A DNA stretch of 64,000 nucleotides from Macrostomum hystrix (lineage: Eukaryota > Animalia > Platyhelminthes), in assembly GCA_950097015.1 (NCBI GenBank), contig CATNEN010000003.1, positions 10,168,001 to 10,232,000 on the forward strand. The letters are read 5' to 3'. Position numbers and translations under genes: made by a program. Of this stretch, positions 2,776 to 58,900 are shown piece by piece. Position 1 is the first letter of the stretch; the number at the start of each line of letters is the position of its first letter. A model generated the notes under the pieces. The model was not told the DNA's origin. It saw nothing but the letters and a program-made list of their open reading frames with translations, and searched no databases.

Positions 2776-5700
2776 TCATTTTAGGCCAACGTAGACCACT
2801 TTCTGGCTTAGCTCCTCGGTGGAGTTGCAATTGTGCGCGTTCAACAGCGTCTGCAGCTCAGCGTCCCGATAGAGACGAACGTCGCGTCCGGCCTCGATCA
2901 GGTTGAAGAGAACCTCCGCCTGGATGGAGGGTAGGAGAGAATCCCTGGTTAGAAAATCAGGGGTTGGGTTGGGAGTGAGGGAGGGTGGGGAGGAGGAAGG
3001 AGGGAGGAGGGTGTGTACATAGGGGGCAGGAAATCGGGGGTTGGTTAGGAGGGTGTGTACATAGGGAGCAGGAAATCAGGGGTTGGTTAGGAGAGTGTGT
3101 ACATTCGGGGTAGGAAATCGGGGGTTGGTTAGGAGGGTGTGTACATTGCGGGTAGGAAATCAGGGGCTAGTTGGGAGGGGCTTTCATCGGAGGCATTGTA
3201 CACTGTGATTAAATATCGCACCTCCTTCAGCAGTCTATTCATGCTGATCAGCGATCCATCGGACGGATCTCGCAGGCGCACAGCACGCTCCTCCTTTCCG
3301 TAACGCAGACGCAGTTCATCCTTATTGCCGCCCGATAAAGCAGCGACAGATTTAGCCCCGACTTGACTGGCCTGCTTTTGCTGATGACTCGAAGCATTTT
3401 CGGCAGCCGAAAAAATCCACAAATCCAAATTGCCAGCCTCTTTTATGCTGCACTGCTCGTGCACAATAGCCTGTTGCAGATTTACCTTCTGCGGTGTGAT
3501 AGCACAATGAGTCAGTCGAACCTTCGGCAAGTTAGAATACTTATCTCTACTTACCTCTCCTATCCCTAGCTTCCTTTCCTTTATCTAGCTATAGCCTATC
3601 CCTCTCTACCTATTTCTGCCGACTACCGCCTCTGCCCTCTCCCTTATCAACCTACCTCTCCCTTATCAACCTACCTCTCCCTTATCAACCTACCTCTCCC
3701 TTATCAACCTACCTCTCCCTTATCAACCTACCTCTCCCTTATCAACCTACCTCTCCCTTATCAACCTACCTCTCCCTTATCAACCTACCTCTCCCTTATC
3801 AACCTACCTCTCCCTTATTAACCTACCTCTCCCGTGTCAACCTACCTCTCCCGTGTCAACCTACCTCTCCCGTGTCAACCTACCTATCCCATGTAAACCT
3901 GTCTCTACCGTATCAACCTACGTCCGTCTAATCAACCTACCTCTCCTGTATCAACCTACCTCTCCCTTATCAACCTACCTCTCCCGTGTCAACCTACCTA
4001 TCCCATGTAAACCTGTCTCTACCGTATCAACCTTCCTCTCCTGTATCAACCTACCTCTCCTGTATCAACCTACCTCTCCCTTATCAACCTACCTCTCCGT
4101 TATCAACCTACCTCTCCCTTATCAACCTACCTCTCCCTTATCAACCTACCTCTCCCTTATCAACCTACCTCTCCCGTGTCAACCTACCTATCCCATGTAA
4201 ACCTGTCTCTACCGTATCAACCTACCTCTCCTGTATCAACCTACCTCTCCTGTATCAACCTACCTCTCCTGTATCAACCTACCTCTCCTGTATCAACCTA
4301 CCTCTCCTGTATCAACCTACCTCTCCCTTATCAACCTACCTCTCCGTTATCAACCTAACTCTCCCTTATCAACCTACCTCTCCCTTATCAACCTACCTCT
4401 CCCTTATCAACCTACCTCTCCCTTATCAACCTACCTCTCCCTTATCAACCTACCTCTCCCTTATCAACCTACCTCTCCCTTATCAACCTACCTCTCCCTT
4501 ATCAACCTACCTCTCCCTTATCAACCTACCTCTCCCTTATCAACCTACCTCTCCCTTATCAACCTACCTCTCCCGTGTCAACCTACCTCTCCCTTATCAA
4601 CCTACCTCTCCCTTATCAACCTACCTCTCCGTTATCAACCTACCTCTCCGTTATCAACCTACCTCTCCCTTATCAACCTACCTCTCTCTTATCAACCTAC
4701 CTCTCCGTTATCAACCTACCTCTCCCTTATCAACCTAGCTCTCCCTTATCAACCTAGCTCTCCCTTATCAACCTACCTCTCCCTTATCAACCTACCTCTC
4801 CCTTATCAACCTACCTCTCCCTTATCAACCTACCTCTCCCTTATCAACCTACCTCTCCCTTATCAACCTACCTCTCCCTTATCAACCTACCTCTCCCTTA
4901 TCAACCTACCTCTCCCTTATCAACCTACCTCTCCCTTATCAACCTACATCTCCCTTATCAACCTACCTCTCCCTTATCAACCTACCTCTCCCTTATCAAC
5001 CTACCTCTCCCTTATCAACCTACCTCTCCGTTATCAACCTACCTCTCCCTTATCAACATACCTCTCCGTTATCAACCTACCTCGCCCTTATCAACCTACC
5101 TCTCCGTTATCAACCTACCTCTCCCTTATCAACCTACCTCTCCCTTATCAACCTACCTCTCTCTTATCAACCTACCTCTCCCTTATCAACCTAGCTCTCC
5201 CTTATCAACCTACCTCTCCCTTATCAACCTAGCTCTCCCTTATCAACCTAGCTCTCCCTTATCAACCTACCTCTCCGTTATCAACCTACCTCTCCCTTAT
5301 CAACCTACCTCTCCCTTATCAACCTACCTCTCCCTTATCAACCTACCTCTCTCTTATCAACCTACCTCTCCCTTATCAACCTAGCTCTCCCTTATCAACC
5401 TAGCTCTCCCTTATCAACCTAGCTCTCCCTTATCAACCTACCTCTCCCTTATCAACCTACCTCTCCCTTATCAACCTACCTCTCCTGTATCAACCTACCA
5501 TTCCCGCCTCAACCGACCTCTTCCGCCTTAAAATACAATTCTTTACTCACTCAACCTCTCTCCAAAAAACATTTCTCCCTAATTGACAAAGCAGGCCAAC
5601 CAACCTGTCCCGCCTCGTCAACATTGAGCATTGGCTGTCGCACAGTCTCGAAGATGAATTCTGCAAAGTCTTTGACAACGCTGGCCAGATCTCCGCTGCC

Positions 5701-47507: not shown

Positions 47508-48537
47508 TCTGTCTTCATCTGCCATTCTCTGTCTCCATCTGCCATTCTCTCTGTCTCCATCTGCCATTCTCTGTCTCCATCTGCCATTCTCTGTCTCCAT
47601 CTGCCATTCTCTCTGTCTCCATCTGCCATTCTCTCTGTCTCCATCTGCCATTCTCTGTCTCCATCTGCCATTCTCTCTGTCTCCATCTGCCATTCTCTGT
47701 CTCCATCTGCCATTCTCTGTCTCCATCTGCCATTCTCTGTCTCCATCTGCCATTCTCTGTCTCCATCTGCCATTCTCTCTGTCTCCATCTGCCATTCTCT
47801 GTCTCCATCTGCCATTCTCTCTGTCTCCATCTGCCATTCTCTCTGTCTCCATCTCCCATTCTCTCTGTCTCCATCTGCCATTCTCTGTCTCCATCTGCCA
47901 TTCTCTCTGTCTCCATCTGCCATTCTCTGTCTCCATCTGCCATTCTCTCTGTCTCCATCTGCCATTCTCTGTCTCCATCTGCCATTCTCTCTGTCTCCAT
48001 CTGCCATTCTCTGTCTCCATCTGCCATTCTCTCTGTCTCCATCTGCCATTCTCTGTCTCCATCTGCCATTCTCTGTCTCCATCTGCCATTCTCTCTGTCT
48101 CCATCTGCCATTCTCTCTGTCTCCATCTGCCATTCTCTGTCTCCATCTGCCATTCTCTGTCTCCATCTGCCATTCTCTCTGTCTCCATCTGCCATTCTCT
48201 CTGTCTCCATCTGCCATTCTCTGTCTCCATCTGCCATTCTCTCTGTCTCCATCTGCCATTCTCTCTGTCTCCATCTGCCATTCTCTGTCTCCATCTGCCA
48301 TTCTCTCTGTCTCCATCTGCCATTCTTTGTCTCCATCTGCCATTCTCTGTCTCCATCTGCCATTCTCTCTGTCTCCATCTGCCATTCTCTCTGTCTCCAT
48401 CTGCCATTCTCTCTGTCTCCATCTGCCATTCTCTCTGTCTCCATCTGCCATTCTCTCTGTCTCCATCTGCCATTCTCTCTGTCTCCATCTGCCATTCTCT
48501 CTGTCTCCATCCGCCATTCTCTCTGTCTCCATCTGCA
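47508..48537. repeat. 20/22-bp minisatellite
   Basis: ctccatctgccattctct(ct)gt. Confidence 0.96.
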
Positions 48538-48745
48538 TGGGGATTTGTGATCGAGGGCCAGGATCAGGTTTAGGGATGACGCTTCGATAATCCGGATTCG
48601 GATAGGGAACTTCATTATCGTTTCGGGATCGGATTTTCAGCCTTTGGTGGCCAGGATTTTTTTAGGGATCAGGGTTGGTGATTAGGGTTGGGAATCAGTG
48701 TTTGGGATCAGGGTAAGGGATCTGGGTTGGGGAACACTGATACAG

Positions 48746-48976
48746 TCTGTGTTAGACTGTGTCTGTGTTAGACTGTGTCAGTGTTAGACTGTGTCAGTGT
48801 TAGACTGTGTCTGTGTTAGACTGTGTCTGTGTTAGACTGTGTCTGTGTTAGACTGTGTCTGTGTTAGACTGTGTCTGTGTTAGACTGTGTCTGTGTTAGA
48901 CTGTGTCTGTGTTAGACTGTGTCTGTGTTAGACTGTGTCTGTGTTAGACTGTGTCTGTGTTAGACTGTGTCTGTGT
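48746..48976. repeat. 16-bp minisatellite
   Basis: tgtgttagactgtgtc. Confidence 0.93.
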
Positions 48977-49304: not shown

Positions 49305-49616
49305 TTGCCTGAAGTTCGATGGTCACTGGCCTGAAGATTGATAGTCACTGGCCTGAAGATTGATAGTCACTGGCCTGAAGTTCGATGGACACTGGCCTGA
49401 AGTTCGATAGTCACTGGCCTGAAGTTCGATGGTCACTGGCCTGAAGTTCGATGGTCACTGGCCTGAAGTTCGATGGTCACTGGCCTGAAGTTCGATGGTC
49501 ACTGGCCTGAAGTTCGATGGTCACTGGCCTGAAGTTTAATGGTCACTGGCCTGAAGTTCGATGGTCACTGGCCTGAAGTTCGATGGTCACTGGCCTGAAG
49601 TTCGATGGTCACTGGC
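49305..49616. repeat. 22-bp minisatellite just downstream of the ANK-cGLR gene
   Basis: gatggtcactggcctgaagttc; the family recurs at 63918-64000. Confidence 0.92.
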
Positions 49617-49798: not shown

Positions 49799-52700
49799 CT
49801 ACTTGGCATCAACGTTAGGGTCACAAACACACAGCACCTGCAGCATTTTGATCCACAACAAGGTTTTTTTCTTGGTATACAATTGGTCTATGCGATCTTC
49901 ACCTTGGTCTTGGCGATCTTCACCTTGGTCTTGGCGATCTTCACCTTGGTCTTGGCGATCTTCACCTTGGTCTTGGCGATCTTCACCTTGGTCCTGGCGA
50001 TCTTCACCTTGGTCTTGGCGATCTTCACCTTGACTGCTCAGCCTCTCAATCTTCCGCTGCAGCCACTCCGGCAGCCGGCACAGCTCGTGAGTGATTCTTC
50101 TGCGCAGCAGCTGCAGCAGCTCCAGATCGCCGCAGATCGCCGCAGCAACCAGCAGCTCCTGCTCATCAGCATCCTTCGTCTGTTCCACATCCCGGATCCA
50201 TTTTTGGTCGCGCCCGTCTCCTGCTCTTGTCAGCTGATTGCGAAGAGCCCGCAGCAGAGCGTCAAAGTTCAGGTAGAACCAGTCTTCGTAGTTCTCCATC
50301 TGCAGCGGAAAGCAGCTAGTAAAGACTTCGCGCTCAATGGGCAGCTTCGGTCGCTCGTCAAACCTGAAGCAGAATTTCCAGGCGGAGTCTCGGCTCCTCA
50401 GGTGCTGCCACACAAAATCCGCAGTGGCCTCACTCGCCGACCTCTCAGCTCCCCAATCGATGCCTCTGCTCGCACTGAACGGCCCGCAGTCGCTTACAAC
50501 TCTCGCTGCACTGAGTCGGTCGCCGAACTTGAGGCAGGCCAGCGCTCTGAGAGACTCTCGCGCTGATCGGGCGCAGTCTGGCAGTTTGTCGATCAGCTCT
50601 GCGAGACTCTCTCGGGATTGCGGGCTGCGGTCTCCATCGGACAGACGAAGCACCAACTCTCTCACGATGTCGTAGATCTCGTGGAACTCGCATGTCTTGG
50701 CTTCTGACACGGGTCTGTCATAGAGTACAGGCAGGATGAGGAACGGGTGGAAGTGGAATCGGCCCGAGTCGGTGACAGGTCGCAGACTGTCCTCGAACTG
50801 CAACAGCAGCTGAGGCAGCTCAGCCATGGCGTCTCTCAATGCGCCGGCTGCCCGATTCAACGCTTCGCTCACACTCTCAGCTGATGTGGGCGACTTCAAG
50901 CCTCTCAGGTACACAGCGGCATCGCTCAGGAAGAAGTGCTCCAGGATCCGACCGTCAGGTGTGTCTGATCTGCAGCCGCTCTCCACACCGTCAAGCAGCA
51001 TCTGCAGCGAGCGCCTCGTGAGACTCACGAGATTCTCCGGCTTCCACTGCTCAGCCGGTGTCTCCTCCAGCATTCGGAACGTGACGGTCTTTGCGTGATA
51101 GGACTTGAAGCCGACGTTTGAGATTTTCTTCTTCAGCAGCCACTTGAGTGTGACGAACAGCTGGCCTTGCAGAGTGCTGAGACTCCGCAGCAGTCGCCTC
51201 TCCAGGAAGCTGCTGCTCACTCGGAGCTGCTGGCCCCCCATTCCGGGAGGAGCTGCGTGCACCACGTGACAGGGCGATGAGGCAGAGGTGAGGTCTCGCT
51301 GGAGCGACTGCAGCACGGACTGGGGGATGTTGGAGTTGGAGACTCTTGGTGGCTGCAGTGGCGCGATGGGAGGGTAGCGGCAGAGGCGGCGGGCGGTGAC
51401 TTCGTCCACAGCCGGTCTCAGGGCGGAGCCATTCCATGAATCGGCTGGGTTGGAGGCTGGAGGAATGGGAAGTGCGAAAAACATTGCAAATGCCACCAGA
51501 TTTCAATTAGATAGTAACAAAACTAATTCTCTACTTTATTTCATGATATCTGTTAGCAGGGCAACAATCCAAGCAGGAAAAAATGTGCCAAGATGGTTTT
51601 TGTAGTCTGAAAACTTTGGCTAGGGCTAACATTGCTAGTTAACTAACAGTTTGCTGGATTCATGCAAAGTGGCACGAGAAACAGTTCCTGTCAATGAGTG
51701 GTATAGTTGCGAGACGCTAAAATAGGACATGAAATAGAATAGGACATTAGATTTTGGCATATAAAAATAATTATGCACGACAAATTTTTAATTAAATCAA
51801 ATTTGGATTGTTTTCCCTGTTTGTTGTTTGCTTTAGAAAGCCAAAGAAGATGAGCAGGCCAAACACATGCTCAATTCTTGTCCCAGCCATCCCGACAGTC
51901 TCTGGCAGGAAATTCTCACCGAATCCGGAGCTCAGGATGTGGCCATTGCTGAGCTCCCCTGTCTGAGCAGCCTCCACTCGGTCGCACTCGCACACATCTC
52001 TCGGGTGAATCGGCCTTCCTGGAATCAGCTGAATAACATCGATGTCAGAGTCGATGTCAGTTCCGCCATCCAGAGAGACCAGGCTGTTGCCCCAGGCCTC
52101 AGAGAAGCTGCCCACAGCGAACCAGTTCTCAGAGTTCAATCTCTTCCTGAGAACATTCTGCAAGACGTCAGCCACAGCGATCTGCAAGGCGGCTCTGGAG
52201 TCCACGAATCCCGACTGAGAGAGCTTGGAGTGCAGCTGCTGGCTCAGCTCTGCGTCGCTGGGTGTGGCTCTGAAGGGTGAGAGGAGGCGGCAGTGCTGAG
52301 TTTCAGTCAGGCTGGGAGGCTCTGAAGGGTGAGAGGAGGCGGCAGTGCTGAGTTTCAGTGACGCTGGGAGGCTCTGAAGCCTATATCTGAAGACAATCAG
52401 TTCCGAACTTCAGCTCTCAGATGTCGAGTCTGATTACTCTGAGAATCCGAAGTCTCACATTATCTAAGAACACTGACTGTTCAGGTCACTTTGACAAGAA
52501 ACAGGAGCTCCTACCTGTTCTGCTTCTCAGGCAAAGGTGCGGAGGATCCACGGCCCAGCAGGTCAACCACTAGGTCATGGCCGATTTCCGTGGCGATTCG
52601 CAGAGCAGCTTCGAGCAAGTCAGGGCTATGAACGAACTCCATGAGTGACTCGACAACACTGAGGTGGCCGTTCTGTGATGCAATGTAGAGAGGTGACTCG

Positions 52701-54091
52701 CCAGCATTTCTTTTAAGATTGACGTCGGCTCGTGCTTTGATGAGTAAGTCGACCACCTCCTTATGGCCATTTTGTGATGCAATGTAAAGAGGTGACTCGC
52801 CAGTATTTCTTTGAAGATTGACGTCGGCTCGTGCTTTGATGAGTGAGTCGACGACCTCCATATGGCCTTGCTGTGATGCAATGTAGAGAGGTGACTGGCC
52901 AGTATTTCTTTGAAGATTGACGTCGGCTCGTGCTTTGATGAGTGAGTCGACCACCTCCTTATGGCCTTGCTGTGATGCAATGTAGAGAGGTGAGCAGCCT
53001 GCATTTGTTAGAAGATTGACGTCGGCTCGTGCTTTTATGAGCGAGTCGACCACCTCCTTATGGCCATTTTGTGATGCAATGTAGAGAGGTGACTGGCCAG
53101 TATTTCTTTGAAGATTGACGTCGGCTCGTGCTTTGATGAGTGAGTCGACCACCTCCTTATGGCCTTGCTGTGATGCAATGTAGAGAGGTGAGCAGCCTGC
53201 ATTTGTTAGAAGATTGACGTCGGCTCGTGCTTTGATGAGTGAGTCGACGACCTCCATATGGCCTTGCTGTGATGCAATGTAGAGAGGCGACTGGCCAGTA
53301 TTTCTTTGAAGGTTGACGTCGGCTCGTGCTTTGATGAGTGAGTCGACGACCTCCTTATGGCCATTTTCTGATGCAATGTAAAGAGGTGAGCAGCCATCGA
53401 CTTCGTGAAGATTGATGTCGGCTCGTGCTTCGATAAGTGAGTCAACGACCTCCTTATGGCCGTTGCAGGATGCAATGTAGAGAGGTGAGCAGCCATCGTC
53501 TTCTTGAAGATTGATGTCAGCTCGTGCTTTGATGAGTGAGTCGACGACCTCCTTATGGCCATTTTGTGATGCAATGTAGAGAGGTGACTGGCCAGTATAT
53601 CTTTGACGATTGACGTCGGCTCGTGCTTTGATGAGTGAGTCGACGACCTCCTTATGGCCATTTTGTGATGCAATGTAGAGAGGTGAGGAGCCAGTATTTG
53701 TTTGAAGATTGACGTCGGCTCGTGCTTTGATGAGTGATTTCACCAGTCGGTCGTGACCATCCATTGATGCAATATACAATGCTGTCGTCCCTCTCCAGTT
53801 CTGCTTATCTACATCCGCAATGGCTCGGATGAGTTTCACCAGAATTTCATGTCTTCCGAATTCACAAGCGAGCATTGCTGGAGTATAAAATGAGTCTGCA
53901 AAGGCGATGAAGGCATCGAGGCTCCCGCCGCTGACAATGAATCGCTCAACCGCCTCCACTCGGTCATCTCTGATGGCTGCCAGCAGCTCCTCGTCGGTGA
54001 GTTCTTGTGCGTCTTCTCGCTGCTGTGAGTAATGTACTGAGTTCATCAGGTACACCAGGACAGCCGTGAGTATTCTCAGCAAGGGAAACAT
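49799..54091 (-). CDS. Ankyrin-repeat / Mab-21 (cGAS-like) nucleotidyltransferase fusion, candidate cGLR (~1233 aa); exons 54091-52515, 52386-51920, 51456-49799
   Basis: Exon 1: 12 LYIAS..GH ankyrin repeats plus caps. Exon 2: VGSFSEAW...DSDIDV. Exon 3: [46 protein letters not shown] (Mab-21 C-lobe). Donor AG|gtagga with acceptor cttcag|A (phase 2), and donor G|gtgaga with acceptor ctccag|CC (phase 1), give one continuous frame. Confidence 0.85.
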
Positions 54092-54606: not shown

Positions 54607-55729
54607 GATCAGTTTGAGTGACACCATATCAGTTTGAGTGACACCAGATCAGTCTGAGTGACACCTGATCAGTTTGAGTGACACCAGATCAGTTTGAGTG
54701 ACACCAGATCAGTTTGAGTGACACCAGATCAGTTTGAGTGACACCAGATCAGTTTGAGTGACACCAGAACAGTTTGAGTGACACCAGATCAGTTTGAGTG
54801 ACACCAGATCAGTTTGAGTGACACCAGATCAGTTTGAGTGACACCAGAACAGTTTGAGTGACACCAGATCAGTTTGAGTGACACCAGAACAGTTTGAGTG
54901 ACACCAGATCAGTTTGAGTGACACCAGATCAGTTTGAGTGACACCTGATCAGTTTGAGTGACACCAGAACAGTTTGAGTGACACCAGATCAGTTTGAGTG
55001 ACACCAGATCAGTTTGAGTGACACCAGATCAGTTTGAGTGACACCTGATCAGTTTGAGTGACACCAGAACAGTTTGAGTGACACCAGATCAGTTTCAGTG
55101 ACACCTGATCAGTTTGAGTGACACCAGATCAGTTTGAGTGACACCAGATCAGTTTGAGTGACACCAGATCAGTTTGAGTGACACCAGATCAGTTTGAGTG
55201 ACACCAGATCAGTTTGAGTGACACCAGATCAGTTTGAGTGACACCAGAACAGTTTGAGTGACACCAGATCAGTTTGAGTGACACCAGAACAGTTTGAGTG
55301 ACACCAGATCAGTTTGAGTGACACCTGATCAGTTTGAGTGACACCAGAACAGTTTGAGTGACACCAGATCAGTTTCAGTGACACCTGATCAGTTTGAGTG
55401 ACACCAGATCAGTTTGAGTGACACCAGATCAGTTTGAGTGACACCAGATCAGTTTCAGTGACACCTGATCAGTTTGAGTGACACCAGATCAGTTTGAGTG
55501 ACACCAGATCAGTTTGAGTGACACCAGATCAGTTTGAGTGACACCAGATCAGTTTGAGCGACACCAGATCAGTTTGAGTGACACCAGATCAGTTTGAGTG
55601 ACACCTGATCAGTTTGAGTGACACCAGATCAGTTTGAGTGACACCAGATCAGTTTGAGTGACACCAGATCAGTTTCAGTGACACCAGATCAGTTTGAGTG
55701 ACACCAGATCAGTTTCAGTGACACCAGAT
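54607..55729. repeat. 20-bp minisatellite upstream of the ANK-cGLR gene
   Basis: gatcagtttgagtgacacca array. Confidence 0.97.
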
Positions 55730-55879: not shown

Positions 55880-55907
55880 GTGTTGCTGTTGTTGTTGCTG
55901 TTGTTGC

Positions 55908-55951
<44 letters not shown>

Positions 55952-58900
55952 TTGTTGTTGCTGTTGTTGTTGTTGTTGTTGTTGGTGTTGTTGTTGTTGT
56001 TGTGGGCGGTCGGTAACAACCGGCACAAGAAGTAGCCGGCCATATCCGGATCCCCCAGTCCGTGGACCAAGCGAATCATCCGGCTGCAGCAAGGCACAGC
56101 CGGGCGTCGTTGTCCCGCCTATCCCAGCAAAACCCCCAGCAACTGCCGCCTCTGCATTAAAAGTAGAAACGGCAGCAAAAGGGTGCTGGCTCGGCTTGCG
56201 CATGGGTCCACTGGGTTCACCGGTCCAACCGTAATTCCGGACATTTTCGTGTCCACGGCCAATGGACCTTCCACCCGACACCTGACAGTCCAGCTCCGGC
56301 GGCCAGCTCCGATGGGGTCTTGCCGGAGTCTGGAGCTGCTCGGAGGTATGCCGGAAGTCGGGCTGTTGGTGTTGTTGCTGCTGCTGCTGCTGTTGTTGTT
56401 GTTGTTGTTGTTGTTGTGGGCTCGGTACTGCAGTCATCGTTGTCAGGCGATTGTCCGGCGTACAAACTCCTCCAGCATGATCCGACACTCCGCCGGTCTG
56501 CTGCTCATATCCGCAAGCGCGGTGATGCCAATGGTGCGCCTGATGCTATCTAACGTCGGGCAGTCCAGCAGTATATGTTCGATGTCCTCCGCCTGCCTCG
56601 CGCAGAGGCGACAGGTGGGGCTGTCATCCCAGCCGACTCTGTGTGCGTACGCTCGTAGCTGTAGCGAGTGGCCTGTGCGGAGACGGGTGTACTCGACGGT
56701 CTCCCGCCTGGTCCATCCGGCCATTTGCTGCCTGTTGATCTTGCGCCCTCCGTAAGTTTCTTCGGACCGTTTGTGCGTCCAGGTGCGGTCTGCCAGCGTT
56801 CTGCGCAGGGCATTGGTTGCCGCCTGGTGCGTCCACTGCCATGGGGAGTTTGCCTGGTCCATCAAGCTGCCTTCTTTGGCTAGCGCGTCCGCAGCCTCGT
56901 TGCCCGGCAATCCGCAGTGTCCTGGGACCCACACTAGGCTAATTTTTCTACCAATGCTGTTCCAGCTGTGGGCAATGCTAGTCGCAATCGGATCGTTCCA
57001 TCGCGCTCGCCGCCTGACGATCGTTGCCAAGGCTGCCGCGCTATCACACGCAATGGTAGCTGTGTTCCAGCCCTCCGTTCTGGCTAGCCATTTAAGTGCG
57101 TCGTCTATGGCTACCAATTCGGCTTGCGTGGAGGAGCATTCGATTCCGGCTGGCTGGCAGCTGCTGCCGATTTCGTTGTTGTCTTGGTCAAACGCGATCC
57201 ATCCCGCACCTCCTTTTTTGTCATCAGTCGTGGATCCGTCCGTGAACAGCGTGACATCAGCTGGCTTGTCTTTGAGCCTCTTCTCGGCTTCCTGCCGGTT
57301 GGCTTGGGCATTGTCCAGCTTGTGGATGGAGTTGCGGTCGAGCTCCAGCGGCTGATTGGTAGACCATGGGGGTGGAGGCAGATCGATGCTGTTTTTGCCT
57401 TCGGTGTTGGTTGGTTGCAGGATGTTTGCCGGCCAATTGCCACGGCACCAGTCTCGCCACGATGGGCGCCGGAGACGCTGCTGCAGGTTGCTTCTGGCTG
57501 CTTTGGCGCGATTGGTTTCCGGTTCGAGTCTGCTGTACTTGTCGTAGCGCGTGAGAGCGTCGAGCTTTCCCCGGCTCGCGATAGTTGTCAGGCCGGCTTC
57601 GGCTAGGAGGGCTTCTGCCGGTGTGCTGGCAAGTGCACCGGTTATGATGCGCGCCGCGGCGCGCTGGCAGCGCTCCAGTTTTTCAATTTGGGATTTTGCC
57701 GCCCATGGCATCCAGGCCGCGGCAGCGTACTCGAGCACCGGCCTGATGAGTGCAAGATAGGCTACGCGGATTGTGCTGTCGTCCATGCCCCATTCCGGGC
57801 CGCCGATGCGCCTAAGTAGGTGGAGTCTTTGCCTGGCCTTCTGGACGCATTTCCGGATGTGTTCCGCGAAGGTTAGGCAGCGGTCGTACGTTACTCCGAG
57901 GAAGCACTGGTGCGGGTTCACGCGGAGTTGCTTCCCATTGAGGTAGATCTCCGGGGCCGCCGACGCATCATTAGGATTCATGGAAAAGACTCCAATTTCG
58001 CATTTGTCCGGGTTGAGGCGGAGGAGCCATCTGCTGCTCCATTTGGCCACTCCGTCAAGCGCTGCCTGGAGTTTGCGCCGGGCTTCTAAAATGCTCCTCC
58101 CTTGGCTCCAGATGGCTAGGTCGTCCGCGAACAGGCTGAAGGCGACATCTCCCGGTATGGCACTCCGAACGTCGTTGATGTAGACGAGGAAGAGGATGGG
58201 CGATAACACGGCCCCCTGAGGCAGGCCCTGCTTCATGGTGACGTGCGCGCCTGTCTCTTGTCCAAGTCTGACCCAGGCCCGACGGTTTGCCAACCAGCTT
58301 TGGATCCACCGGATGAGACGGGCGTCGATGCCTAGGTTGTGCATTTTACTCAGTAAGCCCGCTCTCCACACCGTATCGTACGCTTTGGCATAGTCCAGCG
58401 TAAGCAGCAGCGTTTTAAGCCTGATCTGGAAGCCGTCGCTAATGGCCTGGCTGAGGAGCAGTGCCTGGTCCGTGGTGGCGCGGCCGCTGCGGAAACCGGC
58501 TTGCTCGTCTATGATGAGACCACGGCTCTCAAGCACGAACTTAAGGCGGTTGGCAAGAATTCGCTCAAACCATTTTCCGATAGCTGATGTCAGGCAGATA
58601 GGGCGGTAGGATGGGATCAGTTCCGGATCGGCTCCCTGCTTGAGCAGCGGGATGATTTCGCCCTTCCTCCAGTTTTGCGGCACGTCGGTTTCCGTCCAAG
58701 ATCGTTGGAATAGCCTGTGGAACGTAGCTATGGCACATTGTGGTAGCTCTTTGAGGAGTCGTGGATGGATCCTGTCCGGCCCAGGCGCTTTGGTGCCGTC
58801 CATGTCGTTCAGCGCAGCAATGGTTTCCCCCATGGTGATCTCGCGGCCTTCCGGTCCCAGGTTAGGCGTTTTCCTCAGCGCTTGATTGAGCTCCTTGCGC

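Follow-up and report, generated by a model that had tools for sequence, protein, structure and literature searches.

The 64,000-nucleotide window of the Macrostomum hystrix genome analyzed here (contig CATNEN010000003.1, positions 10,168,001 to 10,232,000 of the forward strand) carries a gene that is read on the minus strand from position 54091 to position 49799; coordinates are positions in this window unless a genomic locus is named. The sequence argues strongly, and with high confidence on our part, for a single three-exon protein-coding gene that joins an array of ankyrin (ANK) repeats to a cGAS-like enzyme, which would make the product a member of the cGAS-like receptor (cGLR) group. The gene belongs to a large genomic family in which the enzyme is conserved and the ANK array varies, and the array may serve as the sensor of a nucleotide-signaling receptor.

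Three open reading frames (ORFs) are found on the minus strand at 52511-54091 (526 aa), 51792-52205 (137 aa) and 49799-51496 (565 aa), as listed in an initial annotation made from the sequence alone. That annotation joined them through phase-matched GT-AG introns, and the frames do agree, with exon 2 open throughout. Exon 1 (52515..54091, 1577 nt) contains the start codon, a short N-terminal hydrophobic stretch and ~14 ANK repeats, and it closes in phase 2 at a CAG/GTAGGA donor that is overlapped by the ANK ORF's own TAG stop (52511). Intron 2 (51457..51919, 463 nt) has exactly the boundaries first proposed, running from a G/GTGAGA donor (GT at 51919-51918) to a pyrimidine-rich AG acceptor ending at 51457. 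Exon 3 opens with two nucleotides of a split codon, G/CC, which encodes Ala at the exon 2/3 join. The product of that join, SGF-A-SNPA, is read as SGFASNPA in the Macrostomum lignano proteins P0005 and P0008, and a tblastn search with the M. lignano protein P0034 passes from query residues 489-632 to 632-1108 with no residue lost at the junction.

The first part of exon 3 (50786..51456) encodes the remainder of the catalytic domain, including the third Asp and the C-lobe (KSYHAKT...W, LEHFF). The second part (50030..50785) encodes a family-specific C-terminal domain of ~250 residues that is mostly helical and corresponds to no specific known fold. The C-terminal tail (49799..50032) consists of an in-frame repeat with a 21-bp unit (7 copies of QGEDRQD at 49883-50032), 27 further residues and the stop codon at 49801-49799. 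This tail has no counterpart in the M. lignano homologues, and the BLASTP match to P0008 stops before the repeat. Exon 2 contains no Met codon, and exon 3 has its first Met only downstream of the third catalytic Asp; a free-standing active enzyme could therefore not be translated from these exons.

For intron 1, the originally proposed donor at 52514 stands and the acceptor is probably a different one. With this donor fixed, nine in-frame, stop-free AG acceptors are available between 52408 and 52243. The AG ending at 52387, as first chosen, gives an exon 2 of 467 nt (starting at 52386) and a product that does count to the 1233 codons claimed. The acceptor ...CTCCTCTCACCCTTCAG ending at 52270 has the best polypyrimidine score of the nine (0.89, against 0.61 for 52387), and its product is similar to the APSDNDLSQQ linker of the homologues. 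Only one strong acceptor, the last, situated 22 nt ahead of the LSQQLH codons, keeps both its position and its phase in the window and in two paralogous loci, L015 and L016. On the basis of the polypyrimidine tract and the conserved position and phase, 52270 is therefore favored, giving an intron 1 of 245 nt (52270..52514, GT at 52514-52513), an exon 2 at 51920..52269 that covers the N-terminal spine helix together with the opening strands of the nucleotidyltransferase core, and a protein of 1194 aa. The Ser/Pro linker described in the initial annotation would then probably be largely intron sequence, and the ANK-enzyme fusion holds with either acceptor.

The phase-2 CAG/GTARG donor is also kept in L015 and L016, where intron 1 measures ~2.4 kb and ~1.1 kb, compared with 245 nt in the window. 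Tandem Repeats Finder and the paralogue comparison identify a 52-bp tandem repeat of 2.2 copies at 52266..52379 on the minus strand, which fills the interval separating the two candidate acceptors, with 2 copies counted in the window, 4 in L015 and 7 in L016. Every unit holds a strong acceptor-like CCCTTCAG (also given as CTCCTCTCACCCTTCAG), and because 52 is not divisible by three the repeated acceptors step through all three phases. Outside the gene, minisatellites occupy both flanks (47508-48536, 48745-48976, 49307-49616, 54607-55729 and 55881-56003), with 22-, 16-, 22- and 20-bp units and a TGT run, and they yield long spurious ORFs on both strands.

The arrangement is not peculiar to this locus. 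The first 351 residues of exon 3, searched in six frames against the 220-Mb genome (42 contigs), place the family at 119 loci or more; most matches are free of internal stops, and there are clusters on contigs 1, 3 (at 10.6-11.9 Mb) and 18. Paralogues were sampled by extracting 10 kb around 20 loci ranging from 94% down to 26% identity, which yielded 21 copies. All 21 have ANK repeats followed by an exon-2-like and then an exon-3-like segment on one strand, separated in the sampled copies by a gap of 84 to 3503 nt between the latter two. In 19 copies the boundary between exons 2 and 3 coincides with that of the window or differs from it by a few residues; L032 and L033, where the exon-2 match stops short, leave the break unplaced. 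One copy, L019, encodes both the ANK repeats and the N-lobe in a single open frame of 452 aa and is therefore fused without intron 1.

Between paralogues, the ratio of nonsynonymous to synonymous substitution rates (dN/dS) is 0.19-0.73 for the C-lobe part of the enzyme and 0.23-0.60 for the C-terminal domain, while the exon-2 value between the closest paralogues rests on too few changes to be meaningful. The enzyme domain is thus under purifying selection and the genes of the family are maintained. A reading of the locus as a transposon or pseudogene was rejected, given open frames in every exon and dN/dS values under 1. At one locus, L023 (G000:C1:23580500-23590400), two family members share a 10-kb stretch in head-to-head orientation, with ANK exons that abut at ~3940-3951.

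The enzyme was assigned by sequence searches run separately on each exon and by examination of the full fold on the M. lignano homologue P0008. Searched alone, the window's exons fall short of Pfam thresholds: exon 3 matches PF20266 (Mab-21_C) at 18.7 bits (E 0.0019) against a gathering cut-off of 24.1, and exon 2 has no match to PF03281 (Mab-21) at E up to 1 and none in a Pfam or PDB sequence search. Three orthologues (P0007, P0010 and P0020) just clear the PF20266 cut-off at 24.8-25.0 bits, and none of ten M. lignano homologues matches PF03281 at E up to 0.01. Against the PDB, the window exons alone reach cGAS at E 0.05, and a profile of 13 M. lignano family members reaches it at E 1.6e-5. 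The same profile, run exhaustively against 1.84 billion proteins, reaches E 1e-10 to 1e-13 with proteins in which PF03281 and PF20266 both exceed their thresholds; the only named one among them is P0137 from the bivalve Sinanodonta woodiana, which also has tetratricopeptide (TPR) repeats. These family-level searches bear out the cGAS-like (Mab-21/cGLR) assignment made at the outset.

P0008 (591 aa) is 61% identical to exon 2 over its own residues 1-110 and 56% identical to exon 3, and is contiguous across the junction. Its AlphaFold model (mean pLDDT 93.6, pTM 0.93) is predicted to have the bilobed cGAS-like fold, and Foldseek ranks cGAS and the oyster Cv-cGLR1 highest, with E about 1e-7.

The motifs named in the initial annotation (GS, DxD, a candidate third acidic residue and a Mab-21 C-lobe) are all present. 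In the exon-2 translation, G92-S93 is encoded at 52112-52107 and D114-x-D116 at 52046-52038, and the third Asp is D17 of the exon-3 translation (AVD17..., codon 51406-51404). Their equivalents in the P0008 model are G49-S50, which follows the strand 45-48, D71 and D73, which begin the strand 71-85, and D128, which lies within the strand 126-135. As modeled, this placement matches what a Pol-beta-type arrangement predicts. All readable paralogue copies (20 of 20) keep the G-S, D-x-D and third acidic positions, with Glu as the third acid in one; the remaining copy of the 21 gave no exon-2 read-out. In an alignment of 63 sequences, the G, D, D and D share columns with those of 36 bona fide Pfam-positive Mab-21 proteins. 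Conservation among paralogues and this alignment together point to an intact set of catalytic residues, as had been proposed.

The best database matches to exon 3 are M. lignano proteins (up to 70% identical), many of which pair ankyrin repeats with a Mab-21 C-terminal domain. P0034 (PAA65091.1, 1117 aa), P0039 (1168 aa) and P0001 (871 aa) are collinear with the window in the order ANK array, N-lobe and C-lobe, and differ from it in repeat number. In P0034, residues 2-477 correspond to the ANK exon, 489-632 to exon 2 and 632-1108 to exon 3. This protein, annotated as BOX15_Mlig030155g1, shares the ANK array, linker, N-lobe, C-lobe and C-terminal domain with the window product, being 56% identical to it in the ANK array and 69% in exon 3. 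The proteins also begin alike at the N-terminus, and the alignments of P0001 and P0034 start at residue 2-4. Compared with these homologues, the linker or intron region of the window, with its 52-bp repeats, is longer, and the 7-copy QGEDRQD tail is found in the window only.

The BOX15_Mlig... model names agree with the gene nomenclature used by Wudarski et al. (PMC5730564), whose annotation derives from RNA-seq-based transcript assemblies (StringTie/TACO/TBONE and TransDecoder); the paper itself makes no mention of BOX15 tags. If this link, which rests on naming, holds, then the fusion is supported at the RNA level in M. lignano. The searches also returned family fragments filed under other labels. 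P0023 (metagenome-assembled genome of a Kangiellaceae bacterium, 1065-bp contig) and P0021 and P0024 (JGI contigs of ~1.7 kb) are listed as bacterial or metagenomic and are most likely eukaryotic contamination of metagenome bins. P0012 (UniProt A0A1I8JHA9) is a 371-aa M. lignano fragment, 63% identical over 65% of exon 3, and its name, 'Terpenoid synthase', is probably an automatic label on a helical region and not a real function.

The ANK array is recognized well above Pfam thresholds, with 13 stretches of Ank (PF00023, E 1.1e-99) and a match to Ank_2 (PF12796, E 5.9e-101). The repeat register resolves 12 units at an exact 33-residue spacing plus degenerate caps, in keeping with the ~14 repeats originally counted. 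Four paralogues with exon-3 products 90-94% identical to the window's reach only 58-75% identity in their best ANK alignments, and their ANK open frames span 380 to 1602 aa. The window's ANK open frame has 526 aa and that of L016 has 380 aa; in L014 (3076-7456, plus strand) and L017 (1816-6622, plus strand) the array occupies one open frame each, of 1460 and 1602 aa respectively, with roughly 40 or more repeats, and their exon-3 products are among those 90-94% identical to the window's. Within the window's own repeats the variable positions are 3-6, 8, 16, 17 and 20, which by our mapping onto the designed-ankyrin (DARPin) consensus are hairpin and first-helix sites that usually contact targets. 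The divergence of the arrays, the location of the variable positions and the near-neutral charge of the enzyme domain (34 K+R, 37 D+E) would fit a role of the ANK repeats in recognition. At the N-terminus of the protein, the short hydrophobic stretch is encoded at 54043-54091 (minus strand), and the M. lignano P0001 N-terminus, MGFLQRLFSAVAACCL, has Gly2 and a pair of Cys residues as potential lipidation sites; this end of the protein may carry a membrane anchor.

The initial annotation also suggested looking for STING in the genome. A search with the Pfam STING_LBD profile (PF15009) gives one match, at G000:C2:9104529-9104996, with 25.6 bits against a cut-off of 27. The ORF of the L013 copy scores 25.0 bits (E 1.4e-5) over profile positions 3-145 of 182 (143), and no other Pfam family matches it. 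This ORF has 14 genomic matches, eight of which cluster within ~140 kb at C2 8.97-9.10 Mb. The copies, with ORFs of ~320-390 aa, lie in this region (G000:C2:8967261-9105035; L013 and L034-L042) and at C39:4228060-4254083, C39:19157985-19158617, C38:7495203-7495865 and C7:13141615-13142574. A profile built from ten copies places STING chains on top in a PDB search (E 1.2e-3), with the similarity mostly in the first helix (AW-F---FLRLILP-L). No homologue of the ORF is found with an E-value of 0.001 or lower, no usable match came from the ESM Atlas, and two upstream exons of the L013 copy match no Pfam family. These ORFs are probably a divergent STING-like family, so the search did recover a multi-copy candidate, through a match that stays below the Pfam threshold.

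Under the explanation favored here, the enzyme would be kept switched off until the protein is engaged by a ligand or partner, most likely through contact with the variable ANK surface, and the ligand would more likely be a protein than a nucleic acid. The activated enzyme would then make a nucleotide second messenger, and a divergent multi-copy STING-like receptor would read it. Taken as a whole, this explanation is put at an even chance of being correct, a level that reflects the inferred mechanism. The step in which the ANK array acts as sensor and the signal is coupled to STING is judged, from sequence evidence, to have an even chance at best and perhaps somewhat less.

Several points weigh against this explanation. 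The intron-1 acceptor is ambiguous among in-frame candidates. The window's exons are under Pfam thresholds, in that exon 3 gives 18.7 of the required 24.1 bits for Mab-21_C and exon 2 lacks a Mab-21 match, and the evidence for the fold comes from P0008, a homologue 56-61% identical. The STING-like match is likewise under its cut-off, with no annotated relative found. The quicker divergence of the ANK arrays could stem from repeat instability and not from selection for new specificities. Finally, five M. lignano enzymes were cloned for a screen of 140 enzymes as constructs that begin at the enzyme domain (Table S3, rows 89-93, of Li et al., 2023; PMC9980059), and in the portions of that article available to us none of the five is named among the active enzymes.

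It is possible, though we think it rather unlikely, that the fusion is real and the ANK array is a module for scaffolding, localization, oligomerization or auto-inhibition and not the ligand sensor, the trigger being something else, such as nucleic acid acting on the catalytic or C-terminal helical domain. According to Li et al. (PMC9980059), known active cGLRs sense double-stranded DNA (dsDNA) or double-stranded RNA (dsRNA) through the catalytic domain, as this alternative would have it; ANK repeats are in addition general protein-interaction modules, and the ~250-residue C-terminal domain is conserved under purifying selection. The near-neutral enzyme domain of the window speaks against this alternative, the same source reporting a more positive predicted surface charge for nucleic-acid-sensing cGLRs, and arrays that evolve fast, from a few to tens of repeats, beside a conserved enzyme suit recognition better than a fixed scaffold. 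A different doubt concerns the product of the enzyme. The cGAS-like fold might make no STING-activating cyclic dinucleotide and instead make a linear or other product (as OAS does), modify a substrate, or serve as a non-enzymatic Mab21-like adaptor. The enzyme-only M. lignano constructs that are not named among the active cGLRs in the parts of Li et al. at hand would suit this, as would the G-S to D-x-D spacing, which is ~8 residues longer than in mollusc relatives, and the sub-threshold STING-like candidate. We nevertheless consider it improbable: retention of the catalytic residues across paralogues down to 26% identity is unexpected for an adaptor, a multi-copy STING_LBD-like family is present in the genome, and many cGLRs are described in that article as inactive in vitro simply for want of a known ligand.

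The join itself could be an artefact, either of two adjoining genes (an ANK protein ending at TAG 52511 and a separate enzyme) or of a decaying copy of a repetitive family. An in-frame stop that overlaps the donor and a region rich in tandem repeats are what such an artefact could leave behind. They are outweighed by the absence of Met from exon 2 and its late appearance in exon 3, by the arrangement kept in all 21 sampled copies, by M. lignano models, RNA-seq-based by their naming, that span both parts, by the single ANK and N-lobe frame of L019, and by open exons throughout with dN/dS below 1, which together leave an artefact very improbable. The specific version with two separate genes was rejected on the lack of a Met in exon 2.

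Fusions of this class have been recorded before, and the novelty implied by the initial annotation does not survive comparison with the literature. In Li et al. (2023; 10.1101/2023.02.22.529553, PMC9980059), cGLRs fused to ANK or TPR repeats are described as minor architectures, and ANK-cGLRs of the coral Stylophora pistillata are shown. Table S2 of that work has six Ank_2 entries (PAA67649.1, PAA58690.1, PAA68676.1, PAA86972.1, PAA45980.1 and PAA68216.1), three of which are named as M. lignano in Table S3; the others are taken to be M. lignano from their accession series. As in the window, the ANK region of these proteins is N-terminal to a cGAS-like nucleotidyltransferase within one protein, and the M. 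lignano constructs of Table S3 share with the window the motifs GSFAEAWGNSL...D-x-D, LR-STSFLER, GLKTYHAKT and FHPFLILP. The present locus differs in coming from another macrostomid species, with ~70% identity to its best M. lignano match. In that article the fusions appear in the supplementary tables only, the constructs tested are enzyme-only, and there is no discussion of the flatworm expansion or of ANK variability.

Set against human cGAS, human MB21D2 and Crassostrea virginica Cv-cGLR1 (PDB 7ftr, 7lt1 and 8gjw), the window product shows 11-18% identity, an N-lobe without a Pfam-level match, an activation-loop region ~8 residues longer, a near-neutral charge, and the addition of both the ANK array and the ~250-residue helical C-terminal domain. 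Like NLRs and other repeat-based innate receptors, it combines a variable repeat module with a conserved signaling module in a large, clustered and fast-diversifying family. Unlike in NLRs, the putative output would be a nucleotide messenger and not oligomerization-driven signaling, and no exon has a Pfam match to NACHT/NB-ARC or leucine-rich repeat (LRR) domains. The resemblance to NLRs, drawn by analogy, is one of logic only and not of membership.

The single locus adds little, this class of fusion having been listed before, flatworm members included, and the interest lies at the level of the family: at least 119 loci with a uniform architecture, ANK arrays that vary in length beside exon-3 products 90-94% identical, a conserved extra C-terminal domain and a STING-like family that may have expanded alongside. 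Only a minority of cGLRs have a known ligand, and these sense nucleic acids. A conserved cGAS-like enzyme wired to a fast-changing ANK surface is thus a natural place to look for protein-sensing cGLRs, and the idea is testable, M. lignano being a transgenic laboratory model. We propose, tentatively and with more doubt than conviction, that the more than 100 ANK-array cGLR genes form a diversified receptor repertoire whose shuffled and hypervariable ANK surfaces directly recognize pathogen or danger proteins and which signals through a lineage-specific, multi-copy STING-like family. If true, the repertoire would be a protein-sensing cGLR system, NLR- or VLR-like, in a phylum otherwise described as having lost most of its cGLRs.

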